From NCBI GenBank assembly GCA_965202585.1, contig OZ241830.1, positions 8,432,001-8,496,000 on the forward strand: DNA of 64,000 bases, written 5' to 3'. This DNA is from Thalia democratica (taxonomy: Eukaryota). Both the position numbers and the translations under genes were made by a program. Shown here piece by piece: positions 3,001 through 64,000 of the stretch. The notes under the pieces were generated by a model. The model worked only from the letters and a program-made list of their open reading frames with translations, ran no database searches and was not told the origin of the DNA. Every line of letters starts with the position of its first letter. Positions within the stretch are counted from its first letter, which is position 1.

Positions 3001-3045
3001 GAATAATTGGTTCATTACGTTGCGTTTATTGATATTTTATTCTTG
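17..3045 (+). repeat. Left arm of a ~3-kb inverted segmental duplication (partner ~41650-44650)
   Basis: 17-136 matches the reverse complement of 44528-44649. 3001-3035 (gaataattgg...ttgatat) matches the reverse complement of ~41660-41695. Colinear coding and non-coding similarity in between, with many substitutions and indels. Confidence 0.92.
112..1036 (+). CDS. DTX: Deltex-family E3 ubiquitin ligase, RING-H2 + DTC terminal exon (copy 1); any upstream exons lie outside the window
   Basis: RING-H2 C-x2-C...C-x-H-x2-H-x2-C...C-x2-C (CAVC...CEHIFHEKC...CPVC) followed by Deltex C-terminal motifs AFLPDN, FTVGTS, ITWNDIHHKT, GYPDATYL. Acceptor tctcAG at 110-111; the frame is open from 113 through the ATG at 137 to TAA at 1036. 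Confidence 0.9.
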
Positions 3046-21600: not shown

Positions 21601-21937
21601 TTAAAAGACTTATAATTATCAAGGATAGTTTGCATGATAGCTTAATGCTTTCTATTTACTTTGGAGGTTTGGGTGCAGTACAACTTCAATCTTTGTCTAA
21701 ATTTTCACTTAAAAACTTTTTGTAACTCTCGCTGTGTTGATTTTTCAAATGCTCGTGCATGGAATATTGCATACTGCGTAGAGTTATCTTTCTAACATAT
21801 AGTAATATATAGGTCGTAATAGTTTTGTTCTTAAATTATGCTTTCATTTAAATATAACGTTTTATGGATACATAAAAACTGTATTTTAAACTACTATGAA
21901 AAACATGATTTTACAAAATACAAACCAATATATCTTT

Positions 21938-24919
21938 TGTATAAGTATTTACCTAGTTTAACTATGTTTTGTGTTACAGACTTTATCATTCTTGTAATTA
22001 GTTTGTGAATAAACTCAACCAAGAAGGATATATTTATTTATGATAAAGTCAAGCTGAATTAAATTAACAATGCCTGTGAATAAATGCCCTCTTGAGAGTT
22101 GCACATATGAAACACCAGACGTCAATTCTTCTGTAGTTGCCTCTTTGCTTATCACTCACAACAATGTTCACATTAATGCAAATTCTTTAAAACCAAAGCC
22201 TCTAAAGATGGACCGTCCTCGAATAGGGACAGACTGCAATGAAGAGGGTTGGAATATATTTGTACAGAAAATGAACTATTTTTAAAGATAGCATAGAGAT
22301 GACAGAGATGGAAAAACGTCGTAAACTGTACCAGTGCTGTGAGGAAGATTTAGGCGATGCTATTCTGAAAGGACATTAATATGTAGTAAATTTAAGTGAG
22401 CAAGAGCTTTTAAGGATGATTAAGCAGCTTGCAGTTATTCCTGTTTCAGTTGTTGTACGACGATCAGACTTTCTTCGTGCAAGACAGGATTTGACTGAAA
22501 ATACTAGATCATTTGCCGCCCGTTTAAAGGGAAAAGCCTTTACATGCTCGTACACATGTAAATGCCCCAAGGATGGCTGTAATTAAATGATAGATTTTAC
22601 AGACATAATCCTAAAAGATGTCATGGTATTAGGTTTAGTGGATGAGGATATCCGTAAAGAGGTGCTAGGATGGGAAAGTCTAGATGAAAGAAATGTCAAT
22701 GAGACAATCGGTTTTTTTGAAGGAAAAGAGATGGCACGTGATGCAATGTCAAAACCCGCTGTTACAGCCTCAGTTTTCTCATACAAATCCTCAAAGAAAA
22801 TTACATAAAAACCAAGTGGTAAAATAACTTGTGGAATATGTAATAAATCAACTGATAAATTTGTTTAAAGCAGTAAAATTATGAGGTATATTGAGTGTTC
22901 TGCTTGTAAACAATGCTGGATAAAGTCCTGTAAAAAAGTTTATCAAAGTCACCAAAATTATGCCGATAAATCAAATGCACTTGTAGTTGGTGGATTGTAT
23001 ACACCAAATGTATACAAATCCTCAAAGAAAACCACACAAAAACCAAATGGCAAAATAACTTGTGGAATATGTAATAAATCAACTAATAAATTTGTTTGGA
23101 GCAAAATGAGGTATATTGAGTGTTTTGCTTGCAAACAATGCTGGATAAAGTCCCGTAAAAAATTTTATCAAAGTCACCAAAAAAAAGCTGATAAGTTAAA
23201 TGCTCTTCTGGTTGGTGGATTGTCTAAACAAAACTTTGATATCTTTAGCAGCCGAGGTCGTAGGAAAAATATGTTCGAGCGTAAAAACGTCAAGAAGAGA
23301 AAGGAGATACATGGGCAGAAAAGTGTATTTCTACACACTGGATGGCGACGAAAACCGCAAAAATCCCAATGCAATCCTACCCTACCTCCAAATGATAAGA
23401 AGTCATTACCTTACGTCAGAAAGAGTGTTATGACTTACAATAAACCGAAGATCTCAAAAACGTGGCTTGACATTTGGAATAAAAAGAAAGAATCTCTCAG
23501 TACTCGTTTTGTTAAGTCTCTAGAGAATATAAGTAAAAACAAAAAATCTTTGCCACCTTTTAATTGCGGTGATCATGTCGTGATACTAAATCAAACAGGT
23601 AATTTTCCTAGCAAGTGGGGGAAAAGTGGAGTGGTGGTGGAAGTGAAGGACTGTCAACAATGTGTTGTCAAAGTTGATGGATCAAATCGCTTAACTGTTC
23701 AAAATCGTAAGTTTCTGAGAAGATTTACCCCTCCTGTTTGCAAATGTCTAAGTAGTTTTCCTTATCTGAGAAAAGCAAACATACCACTGTTAAACTTTGT
23801 CTTTTCTGGTAAAGTTGAGGAAAAAAAATGTCAAGAAAAGTTTTGATGTTCTGCGTTTCCAGAAGGAAGATTCTTTTTGAATAAGCATTGTGTAATTTCC
23901 CTCTGTACTAATGGTTTTCTTCAAAATTGATGTTGAACTGGAATGGCTCGGATTTGCTTTGATCTATATTTTCTTGACTTAAGCAAACAGACCACCAAAG
24001 TTTACTTTCAAACAATAATGTGTCCGGGATGAGAGTGTGAAATTACCGGATTATTTGCAGCGTTTTCGTGTGAGACTTTATGATGCTTTTCAAAAGCTTC
24101 GTGACACCGATTTTTCTGATATTCATTTATTGTCAAGTTGGAATGTTCACTGTAAATTAATTTTTATTGTCTAACTAATGAATGAGTTTCAGTCTAATGG
24201 TGACGTCATAAAGTTTGTAGTTGACTTTGCAGCAGACTTGTCTAACAGCCATCTGTTCAAAGTAATCTTGGATGAGGACGCAGGGATTGACTTTCAAAAA
24301 TTCGAACTATTAGTTGGTATCGAGTATTTGGAAAATAAGTGTAGCAGTATTCCCTCAGTGTTTAATGCCATCAGTAATGCACATTCTACTTTGTTTGACG
24401 TCGAAATTATGATAAAGATGATTATCGGCAAATTAAGTGAAGTTTCAAGTTAATTAGATGAGTGGCGTGTGGTTTCGTTCTTCAAAGCTGAAAAGTTCAA
24501 ATCGGTGAAGCAATTAAGTTTTTGAATGCTTGCAACCAGTAAATAAATGAAGAAAAGTAAAGAATTAGTAAATTAGAATTAAGTAAAGTCTCAAATTTTT
24601 GTTACTGTTTGTTTGTTATAGTTGTAGTTTGTTATAGCAAATCATTTAACAGTGAACTAAGTTAATCGTGATTTTTTAAATGTTTTTGTCTTCTTGAGTT
24701 TAAATTCGTTGAATTTTAGACCTGAAAAATGCGTTTAAATTGTAATAAATTGTTTTAAAATAATTTTGTTTCACTAGGTAAATTTTTCGTTTTATCTCCT
24801 TCGTAGATAAAATCTGAGGGGAGATGTATAAGTATTTACCTAGTTCAACTATGTTTTGTATTACAGACTTTATCAATCTTGTAATTAGTTTGTGAATAAA
24901 TTCGACCAAGAAAGATATA
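21938..24919 (+). mobile_element. Internally deleted Ty3/Gypsy (Mag-like) LTR retroelement, left arm of palindrome
   Basis: 95-bp direct repeats at 21938-22032 and 24825-24919 start TGTATAAG and contain AATAAA. Polypurine tract GAGGGGAGA at 24816-24824. Interrupted gag from 22070 (KCPLESCTYET...RSFAARLKGKA...LGLVDEDIRKEVL). Integrase C-terminal tail (LPPFNCGDHVVILNQTG...KW...VKVDGSNRLTVQNRKFLR) at ~23550-23730. No RT or RNase H motifs. Confidence 0.8.
22781..23223 (+). repeat. 231-bp tandem duplication of the Cys-rich (CGIC...CxxCxxCW) gag segment
   Basis: atacaaatcctcaaagaaaa at 22781 and 23012; the two units are colinear up to ggattgt. Confidence 0.85.
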
Positions 24920-24970
24920 TATTTATTTATGATAAAGTCTTATTCAATATATTTGAATCTAATAAAAAAT

Positions 24971-27935
24971 TATATCTTTCTTGGTTGAGTTTATTCACAA
25001 ACTAATTACAAGAATGATAAAGTCTGTAATACAAAACATAGTTGAACTAGGTAAATACTTATACATCTCCCCTCAGATTTTATCTACGAAGGAGATAAAA
25101 CGAAAAATTTACCTAGTGAAACAAAATTATTTTAAAACAATTTATTACAATTTAAACGCATTTTTCAGGTCTAAAATTCAACGAATTTAAACTCAAGAAG
25201 ACAAAAACATTTAAAAAATCACGATTAACTTAGTTCACTGTTAAATGATTTGCTATAACAAACTACAACTATAACAAACAAACAGTAACAAAAATTTGAG
25301 ACTTTACTTAATTCTAATTTACTAATTCTTTACTTTTCTTCATTTATTTACTGGTTGCAAGCATTCAAAAACTTAATTGCTTCACCGATTTGAACTTTTC
25401 AGCTTTGAAGAACGAAACCACACGCCACTCATCTAATTAACTTGAAACTTCACTTAATTTGCCGATAATCATCTTTATCATAATTTCGACGTCAAACAAA
25501 GTAGAATGTGCATTACTGATGGCATTAAACACTGAGGGAATACTGCTACACTTATTTTCCAAATACTCGATACCAACTAATAGTTCGAATTTTTGAAAGT
25601 CAATCCCTGCGTCCTCATCCAAGATTACTTTGAACAGATGGCTGTTAGACAAGTCTGCTGCAAAGTCAACTACAAACTTTATGACGTCACCATTAGACTG
25701 AAACTCATTCATTAGTTAGACAATAAAAATTAATTTACAGTGAACATTCCAACTTGACAATAAATGAATATCAGAAAAATCGGTGTCACGAAGCTTTTGA
25801 AAAGCATCATAAAGTCTCACACGAAAACGCTGCAAATAATCCGGTAATTTCACACTCTCATCCCGGACACATTATTGTTTGAAAGTAAACTTTGGTGGTC
25901 TGTTTGCTTAAGTCAAGAAAATATAGATCAAAGCAAATCCGAGCCATTCCAGTTCAACATCAATTTTGAAGAAAACCATTAGTACAGAGGGAAATTACAC
26001 AATGCTTATTCAAAAAGAATCTTCCTTCTGGAAACGCAGAACATCAAAACTTTTCTTGACATTTTTTTTCCTCAACTTTACCAGAAAAGACAAAGTTTAA
26101 CAGTGGTATGTTTGCTTTTCTCAGATAAGGAAAACTACTTAGACATTTGCAAACAGGAGGGGTAAATCTTCTCAGAAACTTACGATTTTGAACAGTTAAG
26201 CGATTTGATCCATCAACTTTGACAACACATTGTTGACAGTCCTTCACTTCCACCACCACTCCACTTTTCCCCCACTTGCTAGGAAAATTACCTGTTTGAT
26301 TTAGTATCACGACATGATCACCGCAATTAAAAGGTGGCAAAGATTTTTTGTTTTTACTTATATTCTCTAGAGACTTAACAAAACGAGTACTGAGAGATTC
26401 TTTCTTTTTATTCCAAATGTCAAGCCACGTTTTTGAGATCTGCGGGTTATTGTAAGTCATAACACTCTTTCTGACGTAAGGTAATGACTTCTTATCATTT
26501 GGAGGTAGGGTAGGATTGCATTGGGATTTTTGCGGTTTTCGTCGCCATCCAGTGTGTAGAAATACACTTTTCTGCCCATGTATCTCCTTTCTCTTCTTGA
26601 CGTTTTTACGCTCGAACATATTTTTCCTACGACCTCGGCTGCTAAAGATATCAAAGTTTTGTTTAGACAATCCACCAACCAGAAGAGCATTTAATTTATC
26701 AGCTTCTTTTTGGTGACTTTGATAAACTTTTTTACGGGACTTTATCCAGCATTGTATGCAAGCAAAACACTCAATATACCTCATATTGCTCCAAACAAAT
26801 TTATCAGTTGATTTATTACATATACCACGAGTTATTTTGCCATTTGGTTTTTGTGTGGTTTTCTTTAAGGATTTGTATACATTTGGTGTATACAATCTAC
26901 CAACTACAAGTGCATTTGATTTATCGGCATAATTTTGGTGACTTTGATAAACTTTTTTACAGGACTTTATCCAGCATTGTTTACAAGCAGAACACTCAAT
27001 ATACCTCATATTTTTACTGCTACAAACAAATTTATGAGTTGATTTATTACATATTCTACAAGTTATTTTACCACTTGGTTTTTATGTAATTTTCTTTGAG
27101 GATTTGTATGAGAAAACTGAGGCTGTAACAGCGGGTTTTGACTATGCATCACGTGCCATCTCTTTTCCTTCAAAAAAACCGATTGTCTCATTGACATTTC
27201 TTTCATCTAGACTTTCCCATCCTAGCACCTCTTTACGGATATCCTCATCCACTAAACCTAATACCATGACATCTTTTAGGATTATGTCTGTAAAATCTAT
27301 CATTTAATTACAGCCATCCTTGGGGCATTTACATGTGTACGAGCATGTAAAGGCTTTTCCCTTTAAACGGGCGGCAAATGATCTAGTATTTTCAGTCAAA
27401 TCCTGTCTTGCACTAAGAAAGTCTGATCGTCGTACAACAACTGCAAGCTGCTTGATCCTCCTTAAAAGCTCTTGCTCACTTAAATTACTACATATTAATA
27501 TCCCTTCAGAATAGCATCCCCTAGATCTTCTTCACATCACTGTTACAGTTGACGGCGTTTTTCTACATCTGTCATCTCTTTGCTATCTTTAAAAATAGTC
27601 CACTTCTGTACAAATATGTTCCAACTCTCTTCATTGCAGTCTGTCCCTATTCGAGGACGGTCCATCTTTGGAGGCTTTGGTTTTAAAGAATTTGCACCAA
27701 TGTGAACATTGTTGTAAATGATAAGCAAAGAGGCAACTACAGAAGAATCGACGTCTGGTGTTTCATATGAGCAACTCTCAAGAGGGCATTTATTCACAGG
27801 CATTGTTGATTCAATTCAGCTTGACTTTATCATAAATAAATATATCTTTCTTGGTTGAGTTTATTCACAAACTAATTACAAGAATGATAAAGTCTGTAAT
27901 ACAAAACACAGTTAAACTAGGTAAATACTTATACA
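24971..27935 (-). mobile_element. Inverted second copy of the Mag-like element, right arm of palindrome
   Basis: LTRs at 24971-25065 and 27841-27935 (both 95 bp). Mirror-image ORFs (26044..27009, 27543..27803, 25437..25712). Confidence 0.8.
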
Positions 27936-27938
27936 AAA

Positions 27939-28070
27939 GATATATTGGTTTGTATTTTGTAATATCATGTTTTTCATAGTAGTTTAAAATACAGTTTTTA
28001 TGGATACATAAAAACTGTATTTTAAACTACTATGAAAAATATGATATTACAAAATACAAACTAATATATC
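27939..28070. repeat. 132-bp near-perfect hairpin (64-bp arms, loop GATA) at the outer edge of the palindrome
   Basis: gatatattggtttgtattttg...acagtttttatg | gata | cataaaaactgt...caaaatacaaactaatatatc; two mismatches seen. Confidence 0.9.
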
Positions 28071-29004
28071 GTTAAATAACTGTTAACCTTATCTGATTAA
28101 AAAGCTCAAGCTTTTTTTTATACTGACCTAAAGGGTTAAACTTATTTCATGAAATTAAAAACTTAATTACATTTTATTTTAGAATTTGTATTTATTTACA
28201 ATCCTATCAAAGTAAAAATAGAAACAATCAAATATAAGCATAATTATATAAAGCTAAAAATTTGCGAAAATCTGCTTTAATATAACTTACCTTTTCCTTA
28301 TTTTAACGGTTTTATTTATTTAATTTTCTTTGCATAAATGTTTGACATTCTGTAAAAAACTTTAAATATAAATAAAACATTTATAAAATCTACTAAAAAT
28401 TTTTTTTTAATGAAAACATTAACAAAATAAGCTTTATAAATTGTCAGAATGTATAAAAAATATATTTATCATAAACAAACTACCAACAACATTTACATTA
28501 ATCGGGATTGTCACTCTTTAAGTCAAAAAATCTGCCCTGTGTAACCTTAAACTGTCCTGAGTCACCTCGAGATTTTTCAAATCCTTGGAAAAAAATTAAC
28601 ATCTCTTCTACATCAATAAAATCAAGTCTTTAACAAAGTTGGTTATAAAAAAAATATTGAAACTATTTTAACTAAGTCTCATACAATAAATATGATAACT
28701 AGCCTAAAATTTTGAAAGTCATAAAACTACCCGGATGTATTTATTAAAAATTAAAAATACCTTGAGGTTCTCAGAATCTCAAAGAGATTTTCTAAACTTT
28801 TAGTATACCCTAGTTTCCCTGAGTTTTTGGCAACCCGTGATTGGTATAATTAATAAAAGATAACAAACAAATTATTTAAAAATATATGGTTTTTGTAAAT
28901 TTTACTTCTGCACTAAAACAATATAAAATTAATCAAATCATTTATTTAAAGCTGTTCTCTTTAAAAACATATAACAAATTAAGTTCTCCTTTTATTGCTA
29001 AAAA

Positions 29005-29414: not shown

Positions 29415-29517
29415 TAAAGATAACGATATAACTTAAGTTGTTTTTAGATTTTGTTTTCATAGAAATCTTTTATTCCAAAAAGTAGAACATCAAAAAAGTA
29501 AAAAAACGTCAAAAAAT

Positions 29518-29870
29518 TGTGAGTTACGCATTTGGTGGACCAACATCCAAAATCTCAGTTGGGTCTGGCTGACTGTCTGTGGGAAGATTGTCAACCTGAC
29601 CTTTTTGCCCATATTTTTCCTGCAGACGGGGTGACTTCCTAGCACGTTTATGCTTAGGACCCTCTGCGGGCAGTTTGGTACTTGTATTATTTAAACTAGA
29701 CATAATAAAAATAAAATTGTTTTATTTATCAAACTTATTATAATGTATCAGTGAATTTTATCTATCAATACTTAAGACTATTTTAGACTACTTTATATAA
29801 ATTAGGCAATATAGTATGGTGATTTATTATACAAAAGAACCATGCAACAGTTTTATAAAATTTCTTAATC
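29518..29870 (-). mobile_element. Old, diverged LTR remnant of the Gag-CSD family
   Basis: Aligns with 36302-36640. The minus-strand frame from ATG 29703 gives MSSLNNTSTKLPAEGPKHKRARKSPRLQEKYGQKGQVDNLPTDSQPDPTEILDVGPP, colinear with the N-terminus of the 694-aa ORF. Ends ...CTCACA at 29518 with no PBS after it. Confidence 0.8.
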
Positions 29871-30567: not shown

Positions 30568-30728
30568 AAGTGGTCTACCGAGTCCAAAATTTTTGATTCG
30601 GCAAAATCCGAATCTAAGTCTTATTTTGAAATTTTATATTCGGCCGAATCCGAGTCCGAGTCTTATTTTGAAATTAGGATTCGGCCGAGTCTGAATCCGA
30701 GTCCAAGTCTTGGATTCGGTAGATCACA
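30568..30728. mobile_element. Complete ~160-bp MITE of the TAGTGATCTACCG family
   Basis: agtggtctaccga ... tcggtagatcaca inverted ends; internal ccgagt/ccgaat repeats. Confidence 0.65.
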
Positions 30729-31029
30729 AATAAAAACATATTTATAAGTTACGTTTAAAAAGTAATCCTAAAACTTAGAGTTTTACTACCTTTTGTGTAA
30801 CGAAAACAAAATACAATTAATATTTTTGATAGTTTCAACACAAAAGTATCAGATTTAAAATAAACTATTAGTTTATTTTAGATAATAAAGTAAGACTATA
30901 CAGCAGACACTTAAAATATTCTAAAAAAAGTGTGAAAAATATTCCGTGGTATTAACATGGATGAGCATATAAAAAATATGTTTTGATCTGAAAATCATTA
31001 AAATGTAAACATTTGAGAAAAAAAAACTG

Positions 31030-31801
31030 TGTAATGAATACGTGCATTATTCATTATTCAAAGTTGAGCTCAGAGAATATTTTGAGTTTGACACGCTTCA
31101 TTGCACTAGCCAATGAGAATCATCTGACGTGTTTCAAACTAATTCTGATGCAACTAAATATCAGAAAAGGACAGTCAGTGTATTTGTAAGCAGTTGGTGA
31201 GTTGGTGTGCAGCTGGAACTACCTTGTATTGAATTGTGATTGTGTATTGTAAGTATTGTTTTGTGTTAAAAGTGAACATTTTAACTGGTATTTAATTGTT
31301 TTAATATTTAAGCCAGGTTTATAGTTAATAGTTTATTCTTTTACAGTTTCTTCTTTACTAAAAGTTTTATTAAATTTTTAGTTTATTGTTTAAAGTCTTT
31401 TAAAGAGATTTAAATAGATTGTAGTTTCTAAAAAGTTTGTCATAGTAATTTATAGTTTTGTATATGCTTTTATTTCTTGTTTTGTTTTATATAAAGAGTC
31501 ATCACTTAAAACTGTCTGTCTGATTTATATATAATAGTCTAGAGTAGCTTTAAGTGTTTTATATATTTTCCACTGATAATTACAAATTAGCACTTATAAA
31601 TAAGTTATAGTACTATGTCCCACTTAGAGAATATTAATGATAAGTTGCCTGCAGCGGGTCCTGAAAATAAGCCTGTTAGAAGGTCACCCCGCTTGCAGGA
31701 AAAGTCTGAACAAAAAGGTCAGGTTGACTATCTGCCCACAGTAAGTCACCCTGACCAAACTGAGGCTTTAGATGTTGGGTCACCAACATCGGTAGCCCAC
31801 A
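31030..31801 (+). repeat. 5' LTR, variant A (772 bp); contains the ORF start codon at 31615
   Basis: TG...CA ends; direct repeat of 39572-40343; CCAAT (~31111) and a TGACGT motif (~31125) in the upstream part. Confidence 0.92.
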
Positions 31802-31802
31802 A

Positions 31803-31820
31803 TGGCGTCCTCGGGTGGGC
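31803..31820 (+). promoter_or_regulatory. 18-nt primer-binding-site / tRNA copy, complementary to a tRNA-Asn(GUU)-type 3' end
   Basis: TGGCGTCCTCGGGTGGGC lies 1 nt after the LTR. Its reverse complement GCCCACCCGAGGACGCCA matches 16/18 of the human tRNA-Asn 3' end as I recall it (GCCCACCCAGGGACGCCA). Confidence 0.85.
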
Positions 31821-32074
31821 TACCGATGTTGGTATCAGTGTAATAACAGAAGCAAAAGACACAATAATGTAGGTTGGCAGGAAAACCAAAATCTGTTTCA
31901 TAATAACCACAGTAGTAACAAGCCTAATCAAAATTACTGTAGGCTAGAAGGTACAAATAATGGCAGAGTCCACTATAACTACAAGACCCAAGACAATAAC
32001 CATGATGTAAATGATTATCATCCAAACCATAATATTTCTAAAGTACATGGAAAAAATGATAGAACAGTAAAATC

Positions 32075-33023
32075 GTCACCAACATCGGTAGCCCACAATG
32101 GCGTCCTCTTAAGTAGTGAGAACTACCAATCTTTAAACCAACAGTTAAATAAGTCAGAGTTTGAGGAAAATAAGATACAAACCACTTGTAATAAAATTGG
32201 GCCCTACAGAATTGAAAATGAAAGTAAGGTAAGCACCAATAGGCAGCAGCAGGCTTTAGATTATGAAAGTGCACTAGAAGTGGAAGACTTGGAGATAGAG
32301 AAACTCACAAAGCTAGTAGCCCAAGCTAAAATTTTAGAAAAGAAGGCCATCTTAAAAAAGGAATTAAACTCTATTTATAATAGATTAGATGAAGGTCAAA
32401 ACAAATTCCAAAGTAAGATAAGTTATAGTGATAGCAGTCCTGTATATACTTCTTCCAACACTGTAGGGGCTACACATAACATCAGTCTGAAACAAAGGAC
32501 TTTAGAGAACTGCAAACTTTTTCCCCAGATTGAAGCCATAAGGGACCCTGTTATTGAGTTAAGATTTTTTGAGGATAGGTGTAGTACTTATGGCATCACT
32601 GATGATACAGAAAAGTTTGAAATTCTTCAAAGAATCTGGCCGCGTGCTGACATAATAGACTTTGTTGAAGCTTATGATGAGGACCGAACATACTACAATT
32701 TGTTTAAATTTTTAGAAGGCAAAGGCAGTAAGTTGCCTCGAATCTTAGGTGTGAGCCCATCATGGTCGGGACCAGTAAAATTTCAAAACTTGTTTCTGTC
32801 AGCCAAACAATGGGCAAGAGCAGCTGAGGAAGACAGAATTAAATATTTTATGTATGTACATGCCCCAGATAATCTGAAAAAGAAAATTAAAGAATGCTTT
32901 GGGCTTGGTTATAATGAGTTCTTAAGACGGGCTGAATCAATATGCAACATTGAAGAACAGAGAGTTGTAGAGCAAGCCAAACATGTTTCGTATGAACCTC
33001 ACAAACCATACTATGGTAGGAAC
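32075..33023 (+). pseudogene. Truncated Gag-like body (variant A), broken at GGTAGGAAC before the CSD
   Basis: Begins with the last 23 nt of the LTR plus a 10-nt PBS. Nearly identical to 37065-37993. Ends at a fold-back junction. Confidence 0.85.
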
Positions 33024-33039
33024 GATGTTGATAGCCCAT

Positions 33040-36000
33040 TGTGGGCTATCGATGTTGGTGGCCCAACATTTAAAGCCTCAGTTTGGTCAGGGTGACTTAC
33101 TGTGGGCAGATAGTCAACCTGACCTTTTTGTTCAGACTTTTCCTGCAAGCGGGGTGACCTTCTAACAGGCTTATTTTCAGGACCCGCTGCAGGCAACTTA
33201 TCATTAATATTCTCTAAGTGGGACATAGTACTATAACTTATTTATAAGTGCTAATTTGTAATTATCAGTGGAAAATATATATAAAACACTTAAAGCTACT
33301 CTAGACTATTTTATATAAATCAGACAGACAGTTTTAAGTGATGACTCTTTATATAAAACAAAACAAGAAATAATAGCATATACAAAACTATAAATTAGTA
33401 TGACAAACTTTTTAGAAACTACAATCTATTTAAATTTCTTTAAAAGACTTTAAACAATAAACTAAAAATTAAATAAAACTTTTAGTAAAGAAGAAACTGT
33501 AAAAGAATAAATTTTTAACTATAAACCTGGCTTAAATATTAAAACAATTAAATACCAGTTAAAATATTCACTTTTAACACAAAACAATTCTTACAATACA
33601 CAATCACAAAACAAGTTCAATATGTTGTTGCTTCCAGCTGCACACCAACTCACCAACTGCTTACAAATCCACTGACTGTCATTTTCTGATATTTAGTTGC
33701 ATCAGAATTAGTTTGAAACACGTCAGATGATTCTCATTGGCTAGTGCAATGAAGCGTGTCAAACTCAAAATAATGACAATGCAAGGAAATTTGCACTGTC
33801 ATTACACTTCCTCTTCTTCCCTTCTCTTTTGGAAGAGGATCCTCACTCCTTCTTCTTCTCTCCTGCTAGCAGAATTCTAAGATTGTGTTCCCCGAAACCT
33901 AATTGGTAAACAGCAAAAAAAACCAAAATAAAGGAACAGTGTAACGCATAAATAAATTCAAACTAGTCAGTAACTAATTTAAAAATCAAATTGAAATAGA
34001 ATATTAATAGGAGAGAGAAAAATTAAGTATTTGGTTTTCTTATAATAAAAAAAATTATATAATAACATAAGTTTTATCAGAATAACTAACTCAGTAAAAA
34101 AATCTTAGACAACATGGTAAAAAAAAAAAAAAAAATGGTATCAACATAATAGTATTTGCACAATAAATAAAATAAAATATCAATAAATTTACAGTTACAA
34201 TTCCAAATATTATTTTTACTATAAATAGATAAACAACTCTTAATCAAAATATTAAACTCAAAAAAAAATCTTTGGCAATATAGTATCAATTGGTATTAGA
34301 ATCAAAATTTTTTCACAAAAAAAAAAAAAAAAAACACATGTTTAGTCATACAGAATCATCACTCAACTGTCATGCCTAACTTAACCCTAGAATACAAAGA
34401 ATTTTAAGTCAGCCTTTCTAAAACTTTATTTCTTAATTTGTCAATTCTAAGTTTAATATTTTCAACATGTTCTTCAATTTTTAGACCTTCTTTAATCAAC
34501 TCATCTTTTTCTGAAATTAATTTCAGAATCTCACTCTGAGGTTTAACCTGTTCATTTTTATTGCTATTAGGTTGATAGCCTGTAGAGTTAACTTTTAATA
34601 AATCATTTTGAGAATTAGTATGGGTGCTTTCTTTTGAAAATTGTCTATCATCAGTTACTTCAACCTTATGGGTTAATTGGTGGTTGTGTTTTACCTTACA
34701 ACTGTTTTGCTCTTCTCTCTGCTGTTTGTCTCTTACTTTACAACCACTGACAAAATAACATTTTAGTTGAGGCCTCTGTTGCCTGTTAAACCTCTGGTTA
34801 TAGCTTGGCCACCTGTCTTGGGCATATTTGGAACCTTTAACTGGTTTGTTATTAGGACCTGTTACATTCACAGCCTGTGGTAAATTTCTTTTACTCATTA
34901 CAACATTAAATTGAACAGCCTCACCTTGTGCAAGTGACCTTATAAACTTGTTCGGGTTGTTTTTACTAATTTCAGTGTGATGAACAAAAACATCACTGTT
35001 CTTATTATCACAATGAATGAATCCATAGCCCTTTTTAACATTAAACCACACAACTCGGCCTGTTACTCCATATGCTGTAATTTTTCTGGGAGCTTTAGGT
35101 TTAAATTTTTGTGCCTTTCTGGTTGAATGTACTGAATTAATTTTAGTCATTGCAAATTTACAGTGTTTTACTGTTCTGTTATTACCTTCATGTGGTGAAG
35201 TATTTTGGTTTTGATAGCCTTCATTTTGTTTGTTGTCATAGTGGTTTCTGTCATTATTTGTACATTGGTTGTCTCCCAGCCTATAGTACTCTTGATTAGG
35301 GTGGTTACTACTGTGGTTATTATAAAAAAAATTTTGATTTTGCTGCCAACCTACATTATTGTGACTCTTACTTCTGTACCTACCATAGTATGGTTTGTGA
35401 GGTTCATATGAAATATTTTTGACTTGTTCACAAACTTTCTGTTCTTCAATGTTGCATATTGATTCAGCCCGTCTTAAGAACTCATTATAACCAAGCCCAA
35501 AACATTCTTTAATTTTCTTTTTCAGATTATCTGGGGCATGTACATACATAAAATATTTAATTCTGTCTTCCTCAGCTGCTCTTGCCCATTGTTTGGCTGA
35601 CAGAAACAAGTTTTGAAATTTTACTGGTCCCGACCATGATGGGCTCACACCTAAGATTCGAGGCAACTTACTGCCTTTGCCTTCTAAAAATTTAAACAAA
35701 TTGTAGTATGTTCGGTCCTCATCATAAGCTTCAACAAAGTCTATTATGTCAGCACGCGGCCAGATTCTTTGAAGAATTTCAAACTTTTTTGTATCATCAG
35801 TGATGCCATAAGTACTACACCTATCCTCAAAAAATCTTAACTCAATAACAGGGTCCCTTATGGCTTTAATCTGGGGAAAAAGTTTGCAGTTCTCTAAAGT
35901 CCTTTGTTTCAGACTGATGTTATGTGTAGCCCCTACAGTGTTGGAAGAAGTATATACAGGACTGCTGTCACTATAACTTATCTTACTTTGGAATTTGTTT

Positions 36001-37064
36001 TGACCTACATCTAATCTATTATAAATAGAATTTAATTCCTTTTTTAAGATGGCCTTCTTTTCTAAAATTTTAGCTTGGGCTACTAGCTTTGTGAGTTTCT
36101 CTATCTCCAAGTCTTCCACTTCTAGTGCACTTTCATAATCTAAAGCCTGCTGCTGCCTATTGGTGCTTACCTTACTTTCATTTTCAATTCTGTAGGGCCA
36201 ATTTTTATTACAAGTGGTTTGTATCTTATTTTCCTCAAACTCTGACTTATTTAACTGTTGGTTAAAGGATTGGTAGTTCTCACTACTTAAGAGGACGCCA
36301 TTGTGGGCTACCGATGTTGGTGGCCCAACATCTAAAGCCTCAGTTGGGTCAGGGTGACTTACTGTGGGCAGATAGTCAACCTGACCTTTTTGTTCAGACT
36401 TTTCCTGCAAGCGGGGTGACCTTCTAACAGGCTTATTTTCAGGACCCGCTGCAGGCAACTTATCATTAATATTCTCTAAGTGGGACATAGTACTATAACT
36501 TATTTATAAGTGCTAATTTGTAATTATCAGTGGAAAATATATATAAAACACTTAAAGCTACTCTAGACTATTTTATATAAATCAGACAGACAGTTTTAAG
36601 TGATGACTCTTTATATAAAACAAAACAAGAAATAATAGCATATACAAAACTATAAATTAGTATGACAAACTTTTTAGAAACTACAATCTATTTAAATTTC
36701 TTTAAAAGACTTTAAACAATAAACTAAAAATTAAATAAAACTTTTAGTAAAGAAGAAACTGTAAAAGAATAAATTTTTAACTATAAACCTGGCTTAAATA
36801 TTAAAACAATTAAATACCAGTTAAAATATTCACTTTTAACACAAAACAATTCTTACAATACACAATCACAAAACAAGTTCAATATGTTGTTGCTTCCAGC
36901 TGCACACCACTCACCAACTGCTTACAAATCCACTGACTGTCATTTTCTGATATTTAGTTGCATCAGAATTAGTTTGAAACACGTCAGATGATTCTCATTG
37001 GCTAGTGCAATGAAGCGTGTCAAACTCAAAATAATGACAATGCAAGGAAATTTGCACTGTCATT
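33040..37064 (-). mobile_element. Complete inverted element, variant B (~4.0 kb): LTR-PBS-ORF-PPT-LTR
   Basis: LTRs at 36302-37064 (first 3 nt missing) and 33040-33806. PBS TGGCGTCCTC at 36300-36291. Polypurine tract AAAAGAGAAGGGAAGAAGAGGAAG at 33830-33807, directly before TGTAATGAC. Confidence 0.92.
34404..36488 (-). CDS. 694-aa Gag-like protein fused to a Y-box-type cold-shock domain
   Basis: Intronless ORF. CSD with RNP1 KGYGFI, RNP2 DVFVHH, the Y-box-specific KNNP insert and the C-terminal extension VTGPNNKPVKGSKYAQDR (YB-1: VTGPGGVPVQGSKYAADR). Upstream helical region FFEDRCSTYGITDDTKKFEIL...TYYNLFKFL resembles Gypsy Gag capsid N-terminal domains (inferred). N- and C-terminal coiled-coil-like segments. 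Confidence 0.88.
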   Translation of the reverse strand: MSHLENINDKLPAAGPENKPVRRSPRLQEKSEQKGQVDYLPTVSHPDPTEALDVGPPTSVAHNGVLLSSENYQSFNQQLNKSEFEENKIQTTCNKNWPYRIENESKVSTNRQQQALDYESALEVEDLEIEKLTKLVAQAKILEKKAILKKELNSIYNRLDVGQNKFQSKISYSDSSPVYTSSNTVGATHNISLKQRTLENCKLFPQIKAIRDPVIELRFFEDRCSTYGITDDTKKFEILQRIWPRADIIDFVEAYDEDRTYYNLFKFLEGKGSKLPRILGVSPSWSGPVKFQNLFLSAKQWARAAEEDRIKYFMYVHAPDNLKKKIKECFGLGYNEFLRRAESICNIEEQKVCEQVKNISYEPHKPYYGRYRSKSHNNVGWQQNQNFFYNNHSSNHPNQEYYRLGDNQCTNNDRNHYDNKQNEGYQNQNTSPHEGNNRTVKHCKFAMTKINSVHSTRKAQKFKPKAPRKITAYGVTGRVVWFNVKKGYGFIHCDNKNSDVFVHHTEISKNNPNKFIRSLAQGEAVQFNVVMSKRNLPQAVNVTGPNNKPVKGSKYAQDRWPSYNQRFNRQQRPQLKCYFVSGCKVRDKQQREEQNSCKVKHNHQLTHKVEVTDDRQFSKESTHTNSQNDLLKVNSTGYQPNSNKNEQVKPQSEILKLISEKDELIKEGLKIEEHVENIKLRIDKLRNKVLERLT

Positions 37065-38967
37065 CCACAATGGCGTCCTCTTAAGTAGTGAGAACTACCA
37101 ATCTTTAAACCAACAGTTAAATAAGTCAGAGTTTGAGGAAAATAAGATACAAACCACTTGTAATAAAATTGGGCCCTACAGAATTGAAAATGAAAGTAAG
37201 GTAAGCACCAATAGGCAGCAGCAGGCTTTAGATTATGAAAGTGCACTAGAAGTGGAAGACTTGGAGATAGAGAAACTCACAAAGCTAGTAGCCCAAGCTA
37301 AAATTTTAGAAAAGAAGGCCATCTTAAAAAAGGAATTAAACTCTATTTATAATAGATTAGATGAAGGTCAAAACAAATTCCAAAGTAAGATAAGTTATAG
37401 TGATAGCAGTCCTGTATATACTTCTTCCAACACTGTAGGGGCTACACATAACATCAGTCTGAAACAAAGGACTTTAGAGAACTGCAAACTTTTTCCCCAG
37501 ATTGAAGCCATAAGGGACCCTGTTATTGAGTTAAGATTTTTTGAGGATAGGTGTAGTACTTATGGCATCACTGATGATACAGAAAAGTTTGAAATTCTTC
37601 AAAGAATCTGGCCGCGTGCTGACATAATAGACTTTGTTGAAGCTTATGATGAGGACCGAACATACTACAATTTGTTTAAATTTTTAGAAGGCAAAGGCAG
37701 TAAGTTGCCTCGAATCTTAGGTGTGAGCCCATCATGGTCGGGACCAGTAAAATTTCAAAACTTGTTTCTGTCAGCCAAACAATGGGCAAGAGCAGCTGAG
37801 GAAGACAGAATTAAATATTTTATGTATGTACATGCCCCAGATAATCTGAAAAAGAAAATTAAAGAATGCTTTGGGCTTGGTTATAATGAGTTCTTAAGAC
37901 GGGCTGAATCAATATGCAACATTGAAGAACAGAGAGTTGTAGAGCAAGCCAAACATGTTTCGTATGAACCTCACAAACCATACTATGGTAGGAACAGAAG
38001 CAAAAGACACAATAATGTAGGTTGGCAGGAAAACCAAAATCTGTTTCATAATAACCACAGTAGTAACCAGCCTAATCAAGAGTACTATAGGCTGGGAGAC
38101 AACCAATGTACAAATAATGACAGAAACCACTATGACAACAAACAAAATGAAGGCTATCAAAACCAAAATACTTCACCACATGAAGGTAATAACAGAACAG
38201 TAAAACACTGTAAATTTGCAATGACTAAGATTAATTCAGTACATTCAACCAGAAAGGCACAAAAATTTAAACCTAAAGCTCCCAGAAAAATTACAGCATA
38301 TGGAGTAACAGGCCGAGTTGTGTGGTTTAATGTTAAAAAGGGCTATGGATTCATTCATTGTGATAATAAGGACAGTGATGTTTTTGTTCATCACACTGAA
38401 ATTAGTAAAAACAACCCGAACAAGTTTATAAGGTCACTTGCACAAGGTGAGGCTGTTCAATTAAATGTTGTAATGAGTAAAAGAAATTTACCACAGGCTG
38501 TGAATGTAACAGGTCCTAACAACAAACCAGTTAAAGGTTCCAAATATGCCCAAGACAGGTGGCCAAGCTATAACCAGAGGTTTAACAGGCAACAGAGGCC
38601 TCAACTAAAATGTTATTTTGTCAGTGATTGTAAAGTAAGAGACAAACAGCAGAGAGAAGAGCAAAACAGTTGTAAGGTAAAACACAACCACCAATTAACC
38701 CATAAGGTTGAAGTAACTGATGATAGACAATTTTCAAAAGAAAGCACCCATACTAATTCTCAAAATGATTTATTAAAAGTTAACTCTACAGGCTATCAAC
38801 CTAATAGCAATAAAAATGAACAGGTTAAACATCAGAGTGAGATTCTGAAATTAATTTCAGAAAAAGATGAGTTGATTAAAGAAGGTCTAAAAATTGAAGA
38901 ACATGTTGAAAATATTAAACTTAAAATTGACAAATTAAGAAATAAAGTTTTAGAAAGGCTGACTTAA
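37065..38967 (+). CDS. 5'-truncated Gag-CSD copy (lacks the native ATG; open frame to TAA 38967)
   Basis: Starts at CCACA + PBS. The 571-aa ORF in the track uses a GTG. The CSD is intact apart from a few substitutions (N>D, F>L). Confidence 0.8.
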
Positions 38968-39571
38968 AATTCTTTGTATTCTAGGGTTAAGTTAGGCATG
39001 ACAGTTGAGTGATGATTCTGTATGACTAAACATATGTTTTTTTTTTTTTTTTTTTTTTTGTGAAAAAATTTTGATTCTAATACCAATTGATACTATATTG
39101 CCAAATATTTTTTTTTTGAGTTTAATATTTTGATTAAGAGTTGTTTATCTATTTATAGTAAAAATAATATTTGGAATTGTAACCGTAAATTTATTGATAT
39201 TTCATTTTATTTATTGTGCAAATACTATTATGTTGATACCATTTTTTTTTTTTTACCATGTTGTCTAAGATTTTTTTTACTGAGTTAGTTATTCTGATAA
39301 AAATTATGTTATTATATAAATTTTTTTTATTATGTGAAAACCAAATACTTAATTTTTCTCTCTCCTAGTTAATATTCTACTTAAGTTTGATTTTTAAATC
39401 AGTTCATGACTATTTTGAATTTATTTGATCTTTACACTGTTCCTTTTATTTTGTTTTTTTGCTGTTTACCAATTAGATTTAGGTGAACATCACCTTAGAA
39501 TTCTTCTAGCAGGAGGCAAGCAGAGGATAGAGTGATAATCCTCTTCAAAAAAAAAGGACTACAGAAGATAG

Positions 39572-40343
39572 TGTAATGAATACGTGCATTATTCATTATT
39601 CAAAGTTGAGCTCAGAGAATATTTTGAGTTTGACACGCTTCATTGCACTAGCCAATGAGAATCATCTGACGTGTTTCAAACTAATTCTGATGCAACTAAA
39701 TATCAGAAAAGGACAGTCAGTGTATTTGTAAGCAGTTGGTGAGTTGGTGTGCAGCTGGAACTACCTTGTATTGAATTGTGATTGTGTATTGTAAGTATTG
39801 TTTTGTGTTAAAAGTGAACATTTTAACTGGTATTTAATTGTTTTAATATTTAAGCCAGGTTTATAGTTAATAGTTTATTCTTTTACAGTTTCTTCTTTAC
39901 TAAAAGTTTTATTAAATTTTTAGTTTATTGTTTAAAGTCTTTTAAAGAGATTTAAATAGATTGTAGTTTCTAAAAAGTTTGTCATAGTAATTTATAGTTT
40001 TGTATATGCTTTTATTTCTTGTTTTGTTTTATATAAAGAGTCATCACTTAAAACTGTCTGTCTGATTTATATATAATAGTCTAGAGTAGCTTTAAGTGTT
40101 TTATATATTTTCCACTGATAATTACAAATTAGCACTTATAAATAAGTTATAGTACTATGTCCCACTTAGAGAATATTAATGATAAGTTGCCTGCAGCGGG
40201 TCCTGAAAATAAGCCTGTTAGAAGGTCACCCCGCTTGCAGGAAAAGTCTGAACAAAAAGGTCAGGTTGACTATCTGCCCACAGTAAGTCACCCTGACCAA
40301 ACTGAGGCTTTAGATGTTGGGTCACCAACATCGGTAGCCCACA
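39572..40343 (+). repeat. 3' LTR, variant A (772 bp), preceded by an imperfect purine tract (39547-39571)
   Basis: Direct repeat of 31030-31801; followed by the ACTG TSD and unrelated flank. Confidence 0.92.
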
Positions 40344-41649
40344 ACTGCTTATTATTGGTTCGGTTTTTTGAAGCTAAAAAATAAATAAAAGAAATTTTTG
40401 GATATATTTAGTCCTTACTAATAATTTAATTAGATGTAAATTTGATGAAAATTAAAAATGCAGAAAACAGATAACTAAAGGTTATCGATTAAAAAAAAAG
40501 CTCCAAGTCGCAAGCGGATCCATAGTTTCTTAGCTTAAATTTACTAAAAAGACAGTTTAATGTTAAACTTTAAATTAAATTCAAAACTTTTTTAAACATT
40601 TTTATGAAGAATAAAATTAATGAAGCTAAAAAGTCGTAAAACTAAATTATTGATGCAAAGTATATCTTTTTAGCTCTACAAAAATAGTAACTAATAAATA
40701 AGTTTATTTTCAAATAAGTATAAAAAGTAAATCGTGACTAATAAATATTTTGTAACTTTAAGATTTTAGGTTATTAAACTTGTGAAATTTCAATTACATT
40801 TATAAGGTATTTAAACGAGCACTTATTTGTATGTATTCTATGACCATTAGTTGATTGGTCAAACTAAAACCTAATTTTTTAGCTTTTAGCAATAAAAAAA
40901 TAATTGAGTAAAGATTTTTAGCTTATAAAATAAACGGTTTGTAATAAGTTATGAATTTATTCTCGAGATCTGTTCTTAGATGTAAGTTGATAGTTAAACA
41001 CATCTTGTCGTTAAAGTTACATTTAAATTAGTTCCATACTTTAATAAAATATATTACAGACGAAACTTCCTAGAAAACTATTCTATTATATAGTATTATT
41101 GAATACTTACAATTAAACCCTTATATACTGTAATAAACCTTTTAATAATTACTTAAAAACAGTTAAACTTTTAGACCTAGGTTAATTGTATTGAAACGTG
41201 TGCTCAAAATTATTTTCGAAGTATTAAAAATATGTTTTCTAAAAATTTTACGGAAGTTTAATATGTATCTAAAAGAACTTATATCAAAATTTAGTTTTAA
41301 TGTTTTGATCGACCTTATAAACCATTACTTTGACAGTTAAAGTTCGTTTTATCTGTATTTCGAAAATTTTAACAAAACCGCTGTGCAAATGATTTAAAGC
41401 TAACTGGTATGTTTTAGTTGGCTGCACAAAATGAAGAAAAAAATTTAATAAAGTTTGTTCATATACCCATGTGTTTAGGTTTGTAAATTTAATATTTTTT
41501 TTAATATTTAGCATATCTAAAACTAATAATTTTAAAAAGTGACTTTAAACTAAAATTTAAAATTCAAAAGTTAAAGATTTTTTATAAGGTTATTTTTACT
41601 ACTATAAGGTATAATTCAAAATGTCTTTCTTATCTTGTATCTGTTGTGA

Positions 41650-44600
41650 TATTTATGATAATATCAATAAACGCAACGTAATAAACCAATTATTCTTTTG
41701 TCATAACTTAATCAATTTAATTGTTATTTGTTTTTCTTCCTTTCGATTAAAAGCTGAACTGCTTATCTAAATTTACCGACAGAGACAAGCGGTATTTTAA
41801 GGATTTTTGGCACATTATCATAGATAAAATTTCTTAAAACCACAAACACTCAGATAACTTAAAAAAGACACTTTATTTCTGCAACTGTAACACTGAATCA
41901 TATATCGGCAGTATAGAGGCTATGAATTTACTTAAAAACCTTACTACATGGCCCTTGCTTAATTTAAGTTTTATTTTTACCTTGATTGTTTATAGCAATA
42001 CAAAAGTGTTAAACACCAATGAGTAATGAAAAGTAAATTTACTATGAATCGGTGAATATTAACTATTTTTCAAACATATATAAGTATTTGCCAACGATTA
42101 CCAGTCAAAAATTTGAAATTGTGTACATTTTATTGAACATTTTAGTAAATTTTATAGCTACCAAAAAAACTTTCAGAATATTTGTAAACATAAAATATAC
42201 ACTAACTACTATTCATATATGTACTAATACTTATAAAGGCTTTTTAAAGCTTGATGCTTTATTTGTATCTTTTCAAAACACTTTATTTGAATAAAGGTGC
42301 TACATCTATGTAATACAAACACTTATTTAAAAAAAATAATCACTATTTTTTTAATCAATTTATTTGATCTGGGTCCGGCCGTACCGTAATTGAAATCCGG
42401 ATCTATTTTAAAACAATATCAAGCTAGAGCCGGTAGATCAATAGGTATAAGTCATAAAGTGGAAAGATATGAGTTTAGTTTATGGTAGGCAACGTACGGT
42501 ACAAACCAACTGACATTTATGGTGTGCAATTTTAGGGTTGTGTGAATTTTATGCCAATCAAACACTATAGATCATTTTAGTAATAAATGTTTTTAAAGTG
42601 CCTTTAAAACACAGTGATGCTTGTTAAAAATTTCTCCCATGTAGTGTTAATGAGTTATTTTAAGAGTTTAAAGAATATTATAATTAATTTTCTCCGCCGA
42701 CCAAGATGTGTTTCTAACAATCTGTTCGAGTCTTAAAAAGTTTTTTGTTGTCCTGTTTAAAAAAGTTGTCCATTCCAAAGTTATTTGATATGTGATGCAA
42801 GTATATACTATTTTTTATATAAGTTTAAAGTTTTTGTTATTCTAAAACACCCACGCAAAGTTTATATTACAAGTATAAAAAAATAAACGTCATGAAAGAC
42901 TTAATTAAAATATCAACAGTAATTAAGAGTATTATCTTTTTCTTAATTTCTTATAAACAGTAACTGTAGAACAGGAATTCCCAAAGGGGGCCACATGGTC
43001 TTCTTTGGAACAAGTTCAGGAAATTTGGGGGCAATAAGATAAAAAAGTTCCAAAGGGTGGCGTAAGTAGTAAGCGGGTCATTGGGCCATTTAACATATAA
43101 AGTAAAGCTTACACAAGATATTTTGGAGTTTATGATGAAAATATAAAAAAATATCTTAATGCGGTTTACAGTTTTTTTCAAAATAATAATGTTAAATTAA
43201 CGAAGGTTCTTAAAATATTAGAAGGCCATAGGCTTGCATACGGTTGTAATTTTAACTTAGACTACTAAATTTTTAGCCGTTAATGATAATTGGTGTAGTT
43301 AATATAAGTTGTTTCAGAACTAAGGGTTTACAACTTTATTAGACTCTTTTGAGACTCTTATAAGCTTTATAATACTCTTTTTTATAAAAAAAGAAAAGAA
43401 TAACCCTTGTGTACAAAAAGAAACAGTAAAATTGTACAAAATGATTACATAAATTAAATATATTCTGTGTACAACTTGTTATTAATAAATCTATCACTGT
43501 AAAAATAAAAACTGTAACCAGAGCTTAAATAATTTTTACAACCAAAATAAAAAATTTTGAATTTATTTAATACGAGTAGAAGAACGTAAGATAACTTTTT
43601 TTTTGCGCTCTGACCTAATAAAAAATAAATTAGCTGGATTACTCATCCAACTTAACACCAAGAGCGTGCATATCAGCAGTGACTCGCTCCAAATAAGTCG
43701 CATCCGGATACCCATATGGTCCACCGTAAAGAGAAGTCTTGTGATGGATATCATTCCAAGTTATCACGTTCCTCTCTCCACTGCTCAAACTAGTACCAAC
43801 TGTGAAAGTCAACTTCATCTTCCAGGCTTTTTTGAACAGCTCAAGAACCCTTCTACCTTCTTCGTTGTCAGGCAGGTATGCTGTTCTATGATCACCATAA
43901 TACCTAGCTCCCGGGTTTCCATGCTGGGGTCCTTGTACTCCACCAAGAAGGTCGTATTGAATCTGAATAATTCCACAGTCTTCGTAGCCTGCACAATGCA
44001 TGATTTTACAAGTTTTTACTTTCATGTAGCCATCTGGGCATGGACCAAGCTTCTCTACAATAACAGCACGACATACAGGACACTTGTGACTTTGCTTTAA
44101 AACGTCTATCAGACACTTTTCATGAAAGATATGCTCGCAAACACCTGTACCTTTTATCGTTCCGTTTTCTTTTAAAGGACATAAACAAACTGCACAGTTG
44201 TCATTAATATTTTCATCAATAAGTGCAACTTCGACACCATCAAAGTTTTGTCCGGCTGATTTTTTATTCTTTCTATCAAAGTTTGCGAACTTTCCTTCAT
44301 TTCTAAAATCACCTCCCGGCATCCCAAAGCCCATACTTGATACAATATGTTGCAAATGTGAATGAAAACTACTAGGAACGGAATTTAGTATTGATGTGTT
44401 ATTCACTAAATTCATGTATGAGTTGAGCACGTGATTTTTAAATGGTGTCGCTGATGCACTTGAAGGTTGAGGATTTCGCTGACTATTTTGTTGCTGACCT
44501 CCACTGGTTGATACTTTTTGACTGGAATTTTTCGGCTGCTGTGTTTTGCTACCTCTGATAAATTTTTAGTTACAAAGTTATTAGTTATCTTCGTATAAAA

Positions 44601-44650
44601 TAGCTTAAATCTAATACTTTGTAAGTGTTAAAATATTTAAGAATCTTAGC
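41650..44650 (-). repeat. Right arm of the ~3-kb inverted segmental duplication
   Basis: Reverse complement aligns to 17-3045, including the shared MITE remnant (42366-42445 vs 2258-2340). Confidence 0.92.
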
Positions 44651-63670: not shown

Positions 63671-64000
63671 GTCTAAGCAAGTTGAAATAAATAAATGTTT
63701 CTGAAACCTATAAAGTTATCAATTTACTACACAATATTGTTGTTCATATAGTATGTATATTCTTTTTGTTGTTAAGTACTTTTTTTCGTAGATAAAAAAA
63801 AATTAAAATACATGTTACAAATAGTTTACTACCATCCGGCTTTATAATAAATTAAAAAACTAAGCTTTTAAAAGCATTTTATTAACTATAAGTTAGTTGG
63901 AAATTGGTTTGTTTTACTTAATTATTAAAATCAATCAAAGTTTAGCATTTAAGAATCAATGAATTTTAAAATAAACAAAATTTAAAGTAGCTATAGTTTA

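Follow-up and report, generated by a model that had tools for sequence, protein, structure and literature searches.

A tRNA-Asn-like extension and inverted LTR end at an LTR junction of Thalia democratica, most likely the frozen by-product of a failed reverse-transcription step

In retroviruses and LTR retrotransposons, plus-strand strong-stop DNA consists of a full LTR followed by a copy of at most 18 nt of the 3′ end of the tRNA primer. Its termination one base before m1A58 of the primer is established for retroviruses, and tails that are over-long or mismatched block plus-strand transfer (PMC11251516). A dead-end reaction in which the 3′ end of strong-stop DNA folds back on a complementary sequence and is extended has been documented for the minus strand, where it involves an evolved hairpin and has been seen mostly in vitro (PMC6088434). 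Polymerase-theta end-joining, through snap-back synthesis, leaves templated insertions at its joints, short stretches of the flanks copied in inverted or direct orientation. Other aberrant retroelement DNA is known from LTR circle junctions with inserts derived from the primer-binding site (PBS) or from tRNA, from Ty1 cDNA with untidy ends and from Ty1 cDNA captured at chromosome breaks; primer-derived bases retained in joints, and cDNA ends that were linked with no target duplication, are found there as at the locus described here. Ty3/gypsy elements (Metaviridae) have TG...CA LTRs, a duplication of 4–5 bp and a polypurine tract, their PBS lies one base past the LTR, and in some of them gag begins within the LTR and has a short PBS inside it; the present family shares all of these features. 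Ty1 offers a comparison for this gag layout.

The window, meaning the whole 64,000-nt stretch of T. democratica DNA that was analysed, is A+T-rich (22–35% G+C), and it carries Deltex-type RING genes together with a protein kinase fragment. Paralogous Deltex-type RING genes are borne on an inverted duplication (17–3036 and 41660–44649, 84–90% identical) that brackets the central 38 kb. A 6.2-kb self-palindrome lies at 21847–28026; its arms are ~97% identical and each carries a 321-codon open reading frame (22881–23846 on the forward strand and 26044–27009 on the reverse, 312 of 321 residues identical), for which Pfam returned no match. An additional 67-nt palindrome is present at 27936–28073, and repeats at 12366–12829 stand inside an open reading frame weakly matching phage gp5 C-terminal repeats. 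Closer to the element, a related LTR fragment on the reverse strand (29516–29707, 76–80% identical) ends in ...ACTCACAA with no PBS following and probably belongs to a sister family, as its solo or 3′ LTR, and a 42-nt unit is repeated in three tandem copies at 30587–30711, just upstream of the element.

The LTRs of the element family are 772 nt long and run TGT...ACA. They form TG...CA direct repeats with a short target-site duplication, the PBS follows right after the 5′ LTR (its tRNA match being to a human sequence only), and purine-rich tracts stand directly before both 3′ LTRs. A single spacer base, A at 31802, separates the 5′ LTR from the PBS, which starts with TGG in all copies. Gag is related to that of elements with the pol order reverse transcriptase, RNase H, integrase, but no reverse transcriptase or integrase of the family's own was found: the internal region of 2.5 kb contains no pol, and Pfam detects only a cold-shock domain in the single open reading frame. 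The element is therefore dependent on an autonomous partner. Judged by these features, the family is a non-autonomous Ty3/gypsy-type element with a Gag–cold-shock fusion, and it differs from autonomous Ty3/gypsy elements in lacking pol and in joining Gag to a Y-box cold-shock domain. This Gag–cold-shock family is previously undescribed.

The C-terminal half of the open reading frame encodes the Y-box-type cold-shock domain (Pfam CSD 3e-20; YB-1 structures 1e-27), and its N-terminal 43–45% is 52–57% identical to the 395–406-aa Gag of autonomous gypsy-type elements. On three contigs carrying such relatives (L009, L010 and L012), Gag adjoins a pol of 1152 aa in which RVT_1, RNase H and rve domains are present; like the present family, these autonomous relatives have a 9–10-nt PBS inside gag. 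Relatives of the element are present in marine metagenome assemblies, those of Tara Oceans among them. The fusion is kept in a 78%-identical metagenome copy, P0001, and also occurs at 37068–38967 (+) in the window and at L001:1290-3386. A captured host RNA chaperone domain may here substitute for nucleocapsid. Near its end the LTR forms a U5 hairpin (−25.2 kcal/mol as an RNA fold of an ordinary copy, z = −2.7), with equivalents in every LTR.

The junction under study lies where the outer element's 5′ LTR meets what should be its PBS (Table 1). Positions 31803–31820 read TGGCGTCCTCGGGTGGGC, both by direct reading and in a script re-check, and the initial 10 nt of this 18-mer are the ordinary PBS of the family. 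The LTR's own end at 31782–31800 and the stretch at 31815–31833 are perfectly complementary over 19 nt around a loop of 14 nt, with no pairing beyond either side, which confirms the pairing reported in the preliminary description. That description also had the junction sequence right but set the inverted arm after the 18-mer, when in fact the arm's initial 6 nt overlap the 18-mer's end (7 counting the next T). Beyond the 18-mer, 13 bases of inverted LTR end follow and halt in the loop of the U5 hairpin. The arrangement is the one expected of self-primed strong-stop DNA, a 3′ end complementary to upstream sequence on the same strand followed by a templated inverted copy. As single-stranded DNA, 31760–31845 folds at −23.3 kcal/mol compared with −9.2 ± 2.2 for shuffled sequences (z = −6.4; 0 of 200 shuffles equally good). 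Perfect inverted repeats of ≥15 nt with a loop of ≤60 nt occur at four sites in the 64-kb window, and only the flagged site is G+C-rich.

Table 1 Features of the flagged junction and of the composite that contains it (window coordinates)
Feature	Position	Strand	Basis or remark
Target-site duplication ACTG, left copy	31026..31029	.	right copy 40344-40347; direct reading
5′ LTR of outer element, variant A	31030..31801	+	772/772 identical to 39572-40343
U5 hairpin near LTR end, 8-bp stem, 4-nt loop	31771..31790	+	RNA fold
Inverted repeat (19 nt), left arm, LTR's own end	31782..31800	+	
18-mer complementary to tRNA-Asn-like 3′ end (tRNA positions 76 to 59)	31803..31820	+	human tRF-3a match
Inverted repeat, right arm, reverse-complement copy of 31782-31800	31815..31833	+	ends in U5-hairpin loop
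11-nt filler	31834..31844	+	final 8 nt same as polypurine-tract/U3 boundary at each 3′ LTR
Y′, 228-nt internal piece of a third lineage, ~930-1160 nt past PBS	31845..32072	+	
2-nt filler	32073-32074		before U5-PBS-X piece
Last 24 nt of LTR (from U5-hairpin loop), ordinary PBS and X (first 925 nt internal)	32075..33023	+	
16-nt filler	33024..33039	+	8-nt direct and 8-nt inverted copy of adjacent LTR end, plus 1 nt
Element B, complete (LTR-PBS-internal-LTR), 4028 nt	33040..37067	-	exact LTR termini at both ends
Element B open reading frame, intact, 694 codons	34404..36488	-	starts in 5′ LTR, reads through PBS
Outer element, right part: last 3 bases before PBS, PBS, internal region, polypurine tract	37068..39571	+	
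3′ LTR of outer element	39572..40343	+	772/772 identical to 5′ LTR

The reverse complement of the 18-mer is identical at 16 of 18 positions to the 18-nt tRF-3a of human tRNA-Asn(GTT), a human and not a host sequence, as printed in PMC6472122 and PMC8001983. All eight bases by which the junction exceeds the ordinary PBS (tRNA positions 59–66) match, and the two mismatches, at acceptor-stem positions 67 and 68, fall within the ordinary 10-nt PBS and look like an exchange of two base pairs. Ordinary copies agree with the human fragment at only 9 of 18 positions. Longer human fragments place the T loop and A58 immediately before this 18-nt stretch (PMC11476591). The junction has the composition of strong-stop DNA: a full LTR, then a copied tRNA 3′ end exceeding in length the 10-nt PBS of the element itself. 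The identification of the primer as tRNA-Asn, proposed from the letters alone, is supported by this comparison. tRNA-Asn is a minority primer; a survey of plants assigned it to 2% of their LTR elements (PMC6317226). Among autonomous relatives (L009, L010, L012, L013 and L014), PBS variants of the form TGGCGAC(C/T)CT lie within gag, and the commonest, TGGCGACCCT, is one base off a perfect complement to the 3′ end of human tRNA-Asn; to judge from these motifs, tRNA-Asn may prime the entire clade through PBSs that are short and imperfect. With ARAGORN, neither the window nor nine related contigs yielded a tRNA. A pattern combining the predicted 5′ acceptor strand with a 15-mer gave five matches in JGI metagenome contigs, no tRNA among them, and no matches in viral contigs. 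Full-text literature searches with the 15-mer and with 12-mers of window sequence returned nothing relevant, and 10-mer matches were luciferase cloning primers.

How far the tRNA was copied is masked by a similarity between primer and LTR. The heptamer AGCCCAC is common, in the same sense, to tRNA-Asn positions 58–64 (T loop and stem) and to the U5 end at 31794–31800, a sharing that may be coincidental or may reflect a functional or historical link, and that could even, on the unlikely reading of the whole composite given below, be an evolved feature. Positions 31815–31821 accordingly fit the tRNA (positions 64–58) and the inverted LTR end alike, and because these 7 bases are shared the endpoint of tRNA copying is hidden: any length between 12 and 19 nt would do for the tRNA-templated stretch. 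The preliminary description had asserted a copy of exactly 18 nt with a halt at position 58. Such a stop has retroviral precedent (PMC11251516) and the junction is consistent with it, but an exact stop cannot be read from DNA that fits any length in this range. A primer that was itself an 18-nt tRNA fragment would yield an identical junction.

The same overlap limits how much of the tRNA match is independent evidence, as the inverted LTR copy explains six of the eight extra bases equally well and only GG is independent. Two further observations are independent of it: the departure from the ordinary sequence starts exactly where the tRNA match of ordinary copies ends, and the register of the inverted copy is exactly the one that completes the tRNA sequence. 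Without the tRNA, an end in ...CTC or ...CTCGG is not complementary to the starting point of the inverted copy; with it, all bases are templated and a 6–7-nt match accounts for the turn-back. A rough estimate puts the chance alternative well below 1 in 10,000, before priors. We regard the tRNA-derived tail, and the pairing of that tail with a U5 end, as well supported.

At least five abnormal joints, the flagged one among them, are present in a 9.3-kb composite (31030–40343) to which three element lineages contribute, a context that the preliminary description had missed. Because the outer LTRs are identical throughout and are flanked by the ACTG duplication (possibly 5 bp, AACTG, if the LTR is counted one base shorter), the composite either entered as one unit or is very young, and the same two features support the earlier claim that the product was integrated. 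The match of the last 8 nt of the 31834–31844 filler is weak evidence, with four such matches found in the A+T-rich window and five expected. Piece Y′ shows 97.4% identity with L001 and L002, against 87% with the copy in the outer element itself and 81% with B, and the piece at 32075–33023 is 100% identical to 37065–37995. X ends (33023) where Y′ begins (31845), at the same internal site with 3 nt in common and in different lineages, which suggests a preferred template or product end there. An internal polypurine primer site was rejected as the cause of this breakpoint, the purine run being on the wrong side. The filler at 33024–33039 resembles the LTR end minus the loop and 3′ arm of the U5 hairpin.

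Element B stands in reverse orientation with no target-site duplication, and a comparison of its two LTRs gives five differences, of which four lie no more than 45 nt from the element ends, a pattern that does not look like simple ageing. An ordinary nested insertion was rejected for B on both grounds, the missing duplication and the clustering of LTR differences at the ends; autointegration (deletion or inversion circles) and inversion by LTR–LTR recombination were rejected since the joints they predict are not those seen. The right part of the outer element (37068–39571) has no 5′ LTR upstream, and its reading frame is open with the LTR-encoded start lost. The gag frame from the outer 5′ LTR is truncated once by the rearrangement, and the two short internal pieces are fragments. 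Three of the abnormal joints map to the U5 hairpin.

A survey of PBS length in other copies, proposed in the preliminary description, bears on whether the 18-mer might simply have been inherited. The window copies at 32099 (+), 36300 (−) and 37071 (+) do carry a 10-nt PBS, TGGCGTCCTC then TTAAG, as first reported. This 10-mer has four exact occurrences in the window, where 0.3 chance matches are expected even with one mismatch allowed; near-matches at 47242, 62992 and 63661 were rejected as PBSs. The last two lie inside a tandem array (62436–63677, period ~168 nt), and the near-matches there are satellite sequence. The three window junctions and those of three marine metagenome contigs (L001, L002 and L003) read TGGCGTCC(T/C)(T/C) then TTAAG, so the tRNA-end match at these six ordinary junctions is only 9–10 nt. 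A sub-lineage with a full 18-nt PBS, one copy of which later gained a 13-nt inverted duplication, would agree with the 18-nt PBS normal in retroviruses, and the copy survey here is small; however, the 18-mer is not the norm of the family, since none of the six junctions has it, that of L003, a copy 99–100% identical to variant A, included. A database search with the short open reading frame that opens at the ATG in the LTR gave 21 proteins opening at that ATG: none reads through the 18-mer, two have the ordinary continuation without the extra eight bases, and in most of the remainder the LTR is read out into the DNA that flanks it. In this family the gag reading frame encloses the PBS, and the 18-mer version truncates that frame, a further point against its being an inherited state, which we consider very unlikely. 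An exact-sequence look-up of the short LTR-initiated open reading frame gave no further contig, and viral contigs scanned with an LTR/PBS 17-mer gave only chance matches in G+C-rich phages.

Repair after integration would explain the junction differently, as a chromosomal break in an ordinary integrated copy, where LTR and PBS meet, that was healed through snap-back synthesis: either polymerase-theta end-joining or a template switch during replication would make the 19-nt inverted copy, and the likeness to tRNA-Asn would be accidental, aided by an LTR end that is already T-arm-like. The fillers at 33024–33039 and 31834–31844, with their short direct and inverted copies of neighbouring sequence, are typical of such repair, further inverted duplications unrelated to the element occur in the window, and the inverted copy alone covers most of the extra bases. 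Against this, the available break ends lack complementarity to the start of the inverted copy, so repair needs an untemplated GG, an exact left breakpoint and an exact register, three coincidences whose joint probability is roughly estimated at below 1 in 10,000, and it leaves the other joints, at exact LTR termini and beside the PBS, unexplained. We hold repair to be distinctly unlikely as the origin of the flagged junction; some joints of the composite may have a DNA-repair origin, given the unrelated large inverted duplications in the window. Chimeric or fold-back reads might also have produced palindromic joints and identical duplicates during assembly, and a single window with 100% identical duplicates of 772 and 931 nt and several inverted arrangements invites that suspicion. 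Such an artefact, however, would account neither for fillers and an extension that matches a tRNA nor for joints placed exactly at LTR termini and the same 4-bp duplication at both outer ends, and the inverted arms of the larger structures are 96–98% and not 100% identical, which leaves an assembly artefact extremely improbable.

The explanation that we consider probable is that an over-copied tRNA-Asn tail on plus-strand strong-stop DNA annealed to GCCCAC in U5 and was extended, and that the resulting concatemer was integrated. The element's PBS would pair with only the last 10 nt of tRNA-Asn; plus-strand strong-stop DNA (LTR, spacer A and PBS copy) would have copied the primer beyond those 10 nt, up to the 18 nt that are the usual limit before m1A58. 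The resulting 3′ tail would not be pairable with the family's minus strand, and ordinary plus-strand transfer would not have been completed. Instead, the tail end GTGGGC would have annealed to GCCCAC at a U5 end, on the same molecule or on a sister plus-sense strand, and would have been extended by 13 nt until the U5 hairpin re-formed and displaced it. More template switches or end-joining would then have linked the strong-stop product to other products of reverse transcription, namely the 228-nt piece of the third lineage, the U5–PBS–internal piece, a complete inverted variant-B cDNA and, last, a minus-strand-type product ending just past the PBS, and integrase would have inserted the concatemer with its intact outer LTR ends. 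The data show the sequences, the match to tRNA-Asn, the layout of the composite and the target duplication; we infer the order of events, the extending polymerase and the exact stop, as well as the rest of the assembly pathway beyond the tail and its annealing to U5. The central inference of the preliminary description holds up. Of the self-priming first proposed for this site, the templated inverted repeat stands; fold-back within one molecule does not follow from it, as pairing with a sister U5 strand fits equally well. The sequence likewise fits extension either by reverse transcriptase or by a host polymerase.

Several joints fall at natural ends of reverse-transcription products, among them both termini of a full-length cDNA (B), and the right part starts 3–6 nt before the PBS, which is the end of a minus strand awaiting plus-strand transfer. 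The hairpin found at three joints can displace a nascent strand. The contribution of three lineages argues against an event confined to one particle. A particle usually carries two RNAs, and with three lineages exceeding that number part of the assembly may reflect host end-joining or several steps. The fillers at 33024–33039 and 31834–31844 look as much like polymerase-theta-type repair as like reverse-transcriptase hopping. It is tempting to regard the whole 9.3-kb composite as a single frozen failed plus-strand transfer with both partners surviving, a reading that we find attractive but rather unlikely. Its partners might be, on the left, strong-stop DNA with a full tRNA-Asn tail and, on the right, the minus-strand-type product that ends just past the PBS, a pairing we regard as doubtful to the same degree; each partner might have been rescued by a jump onto other nucleic acids in the particle, which we put forward just as tentatively.

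Set beside the known systems, the junction resembles plus-strand strong-stop DNA in which the element's own PBS is only 10 nt, so that even an 18-nt copy of the normal kind would have 8 nt at its tail with nothing to pair with; here the product is kept in a chromosome and not on a gel, and its exact stop is not readable. It differs from the known self-priming in concerning the plus strand and in using a tRNA-derived tail complementary to the U5 end in place of an evolved hairpin. Unlike other aberrant retroelement DNA, it belongs to a multi-piece concatemer with functional outer ends and an integrase-type duplication, in the genome of a marine invertebrate. Short inverted and direct flanking copies like those of polymerase-theta end-joining are seen at 33024–33039 and possibly at 31821–31844, whereas the start of the flagged inverted copy has no microhomology unless a tRNA tail is assumed. 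The kinds of error are known ones (an over-copied primer, strong-stop self-priming and end-joined cDNAs) in an unusual form that was preserved in a genome, and the junction is most likely a frozen by-product of a failed reverse-transcription step.

Intermediates of reverse transcription are normally visible only in test tubes or infected cells, and one has apparently been fixed in a chromosome here. It names the primer tRNA of the family, for which the 10-nt PBS is insufficient, and the 18-mer predicts the 3′ end of the host tRNA-Asn. For annotation, it suggests that odd palindromes next to LTRs may be informative and should not be dismissed as noise. It also indicates that plus-strand synthesis ran well beyond the part of the tRNA with which the element can pair, and that dead-end products can enter the genome as rearranged concatemers. 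Only on the rather unlikely reading of the whole composite as a single failed transfer would elements with a 10-nt PBS routinely make an unpairable 8-nt tail, and would the sequence, coming from a marine animal that is no model species, document in vivo where plus-strand synthesis halts on tRNA-Asn.
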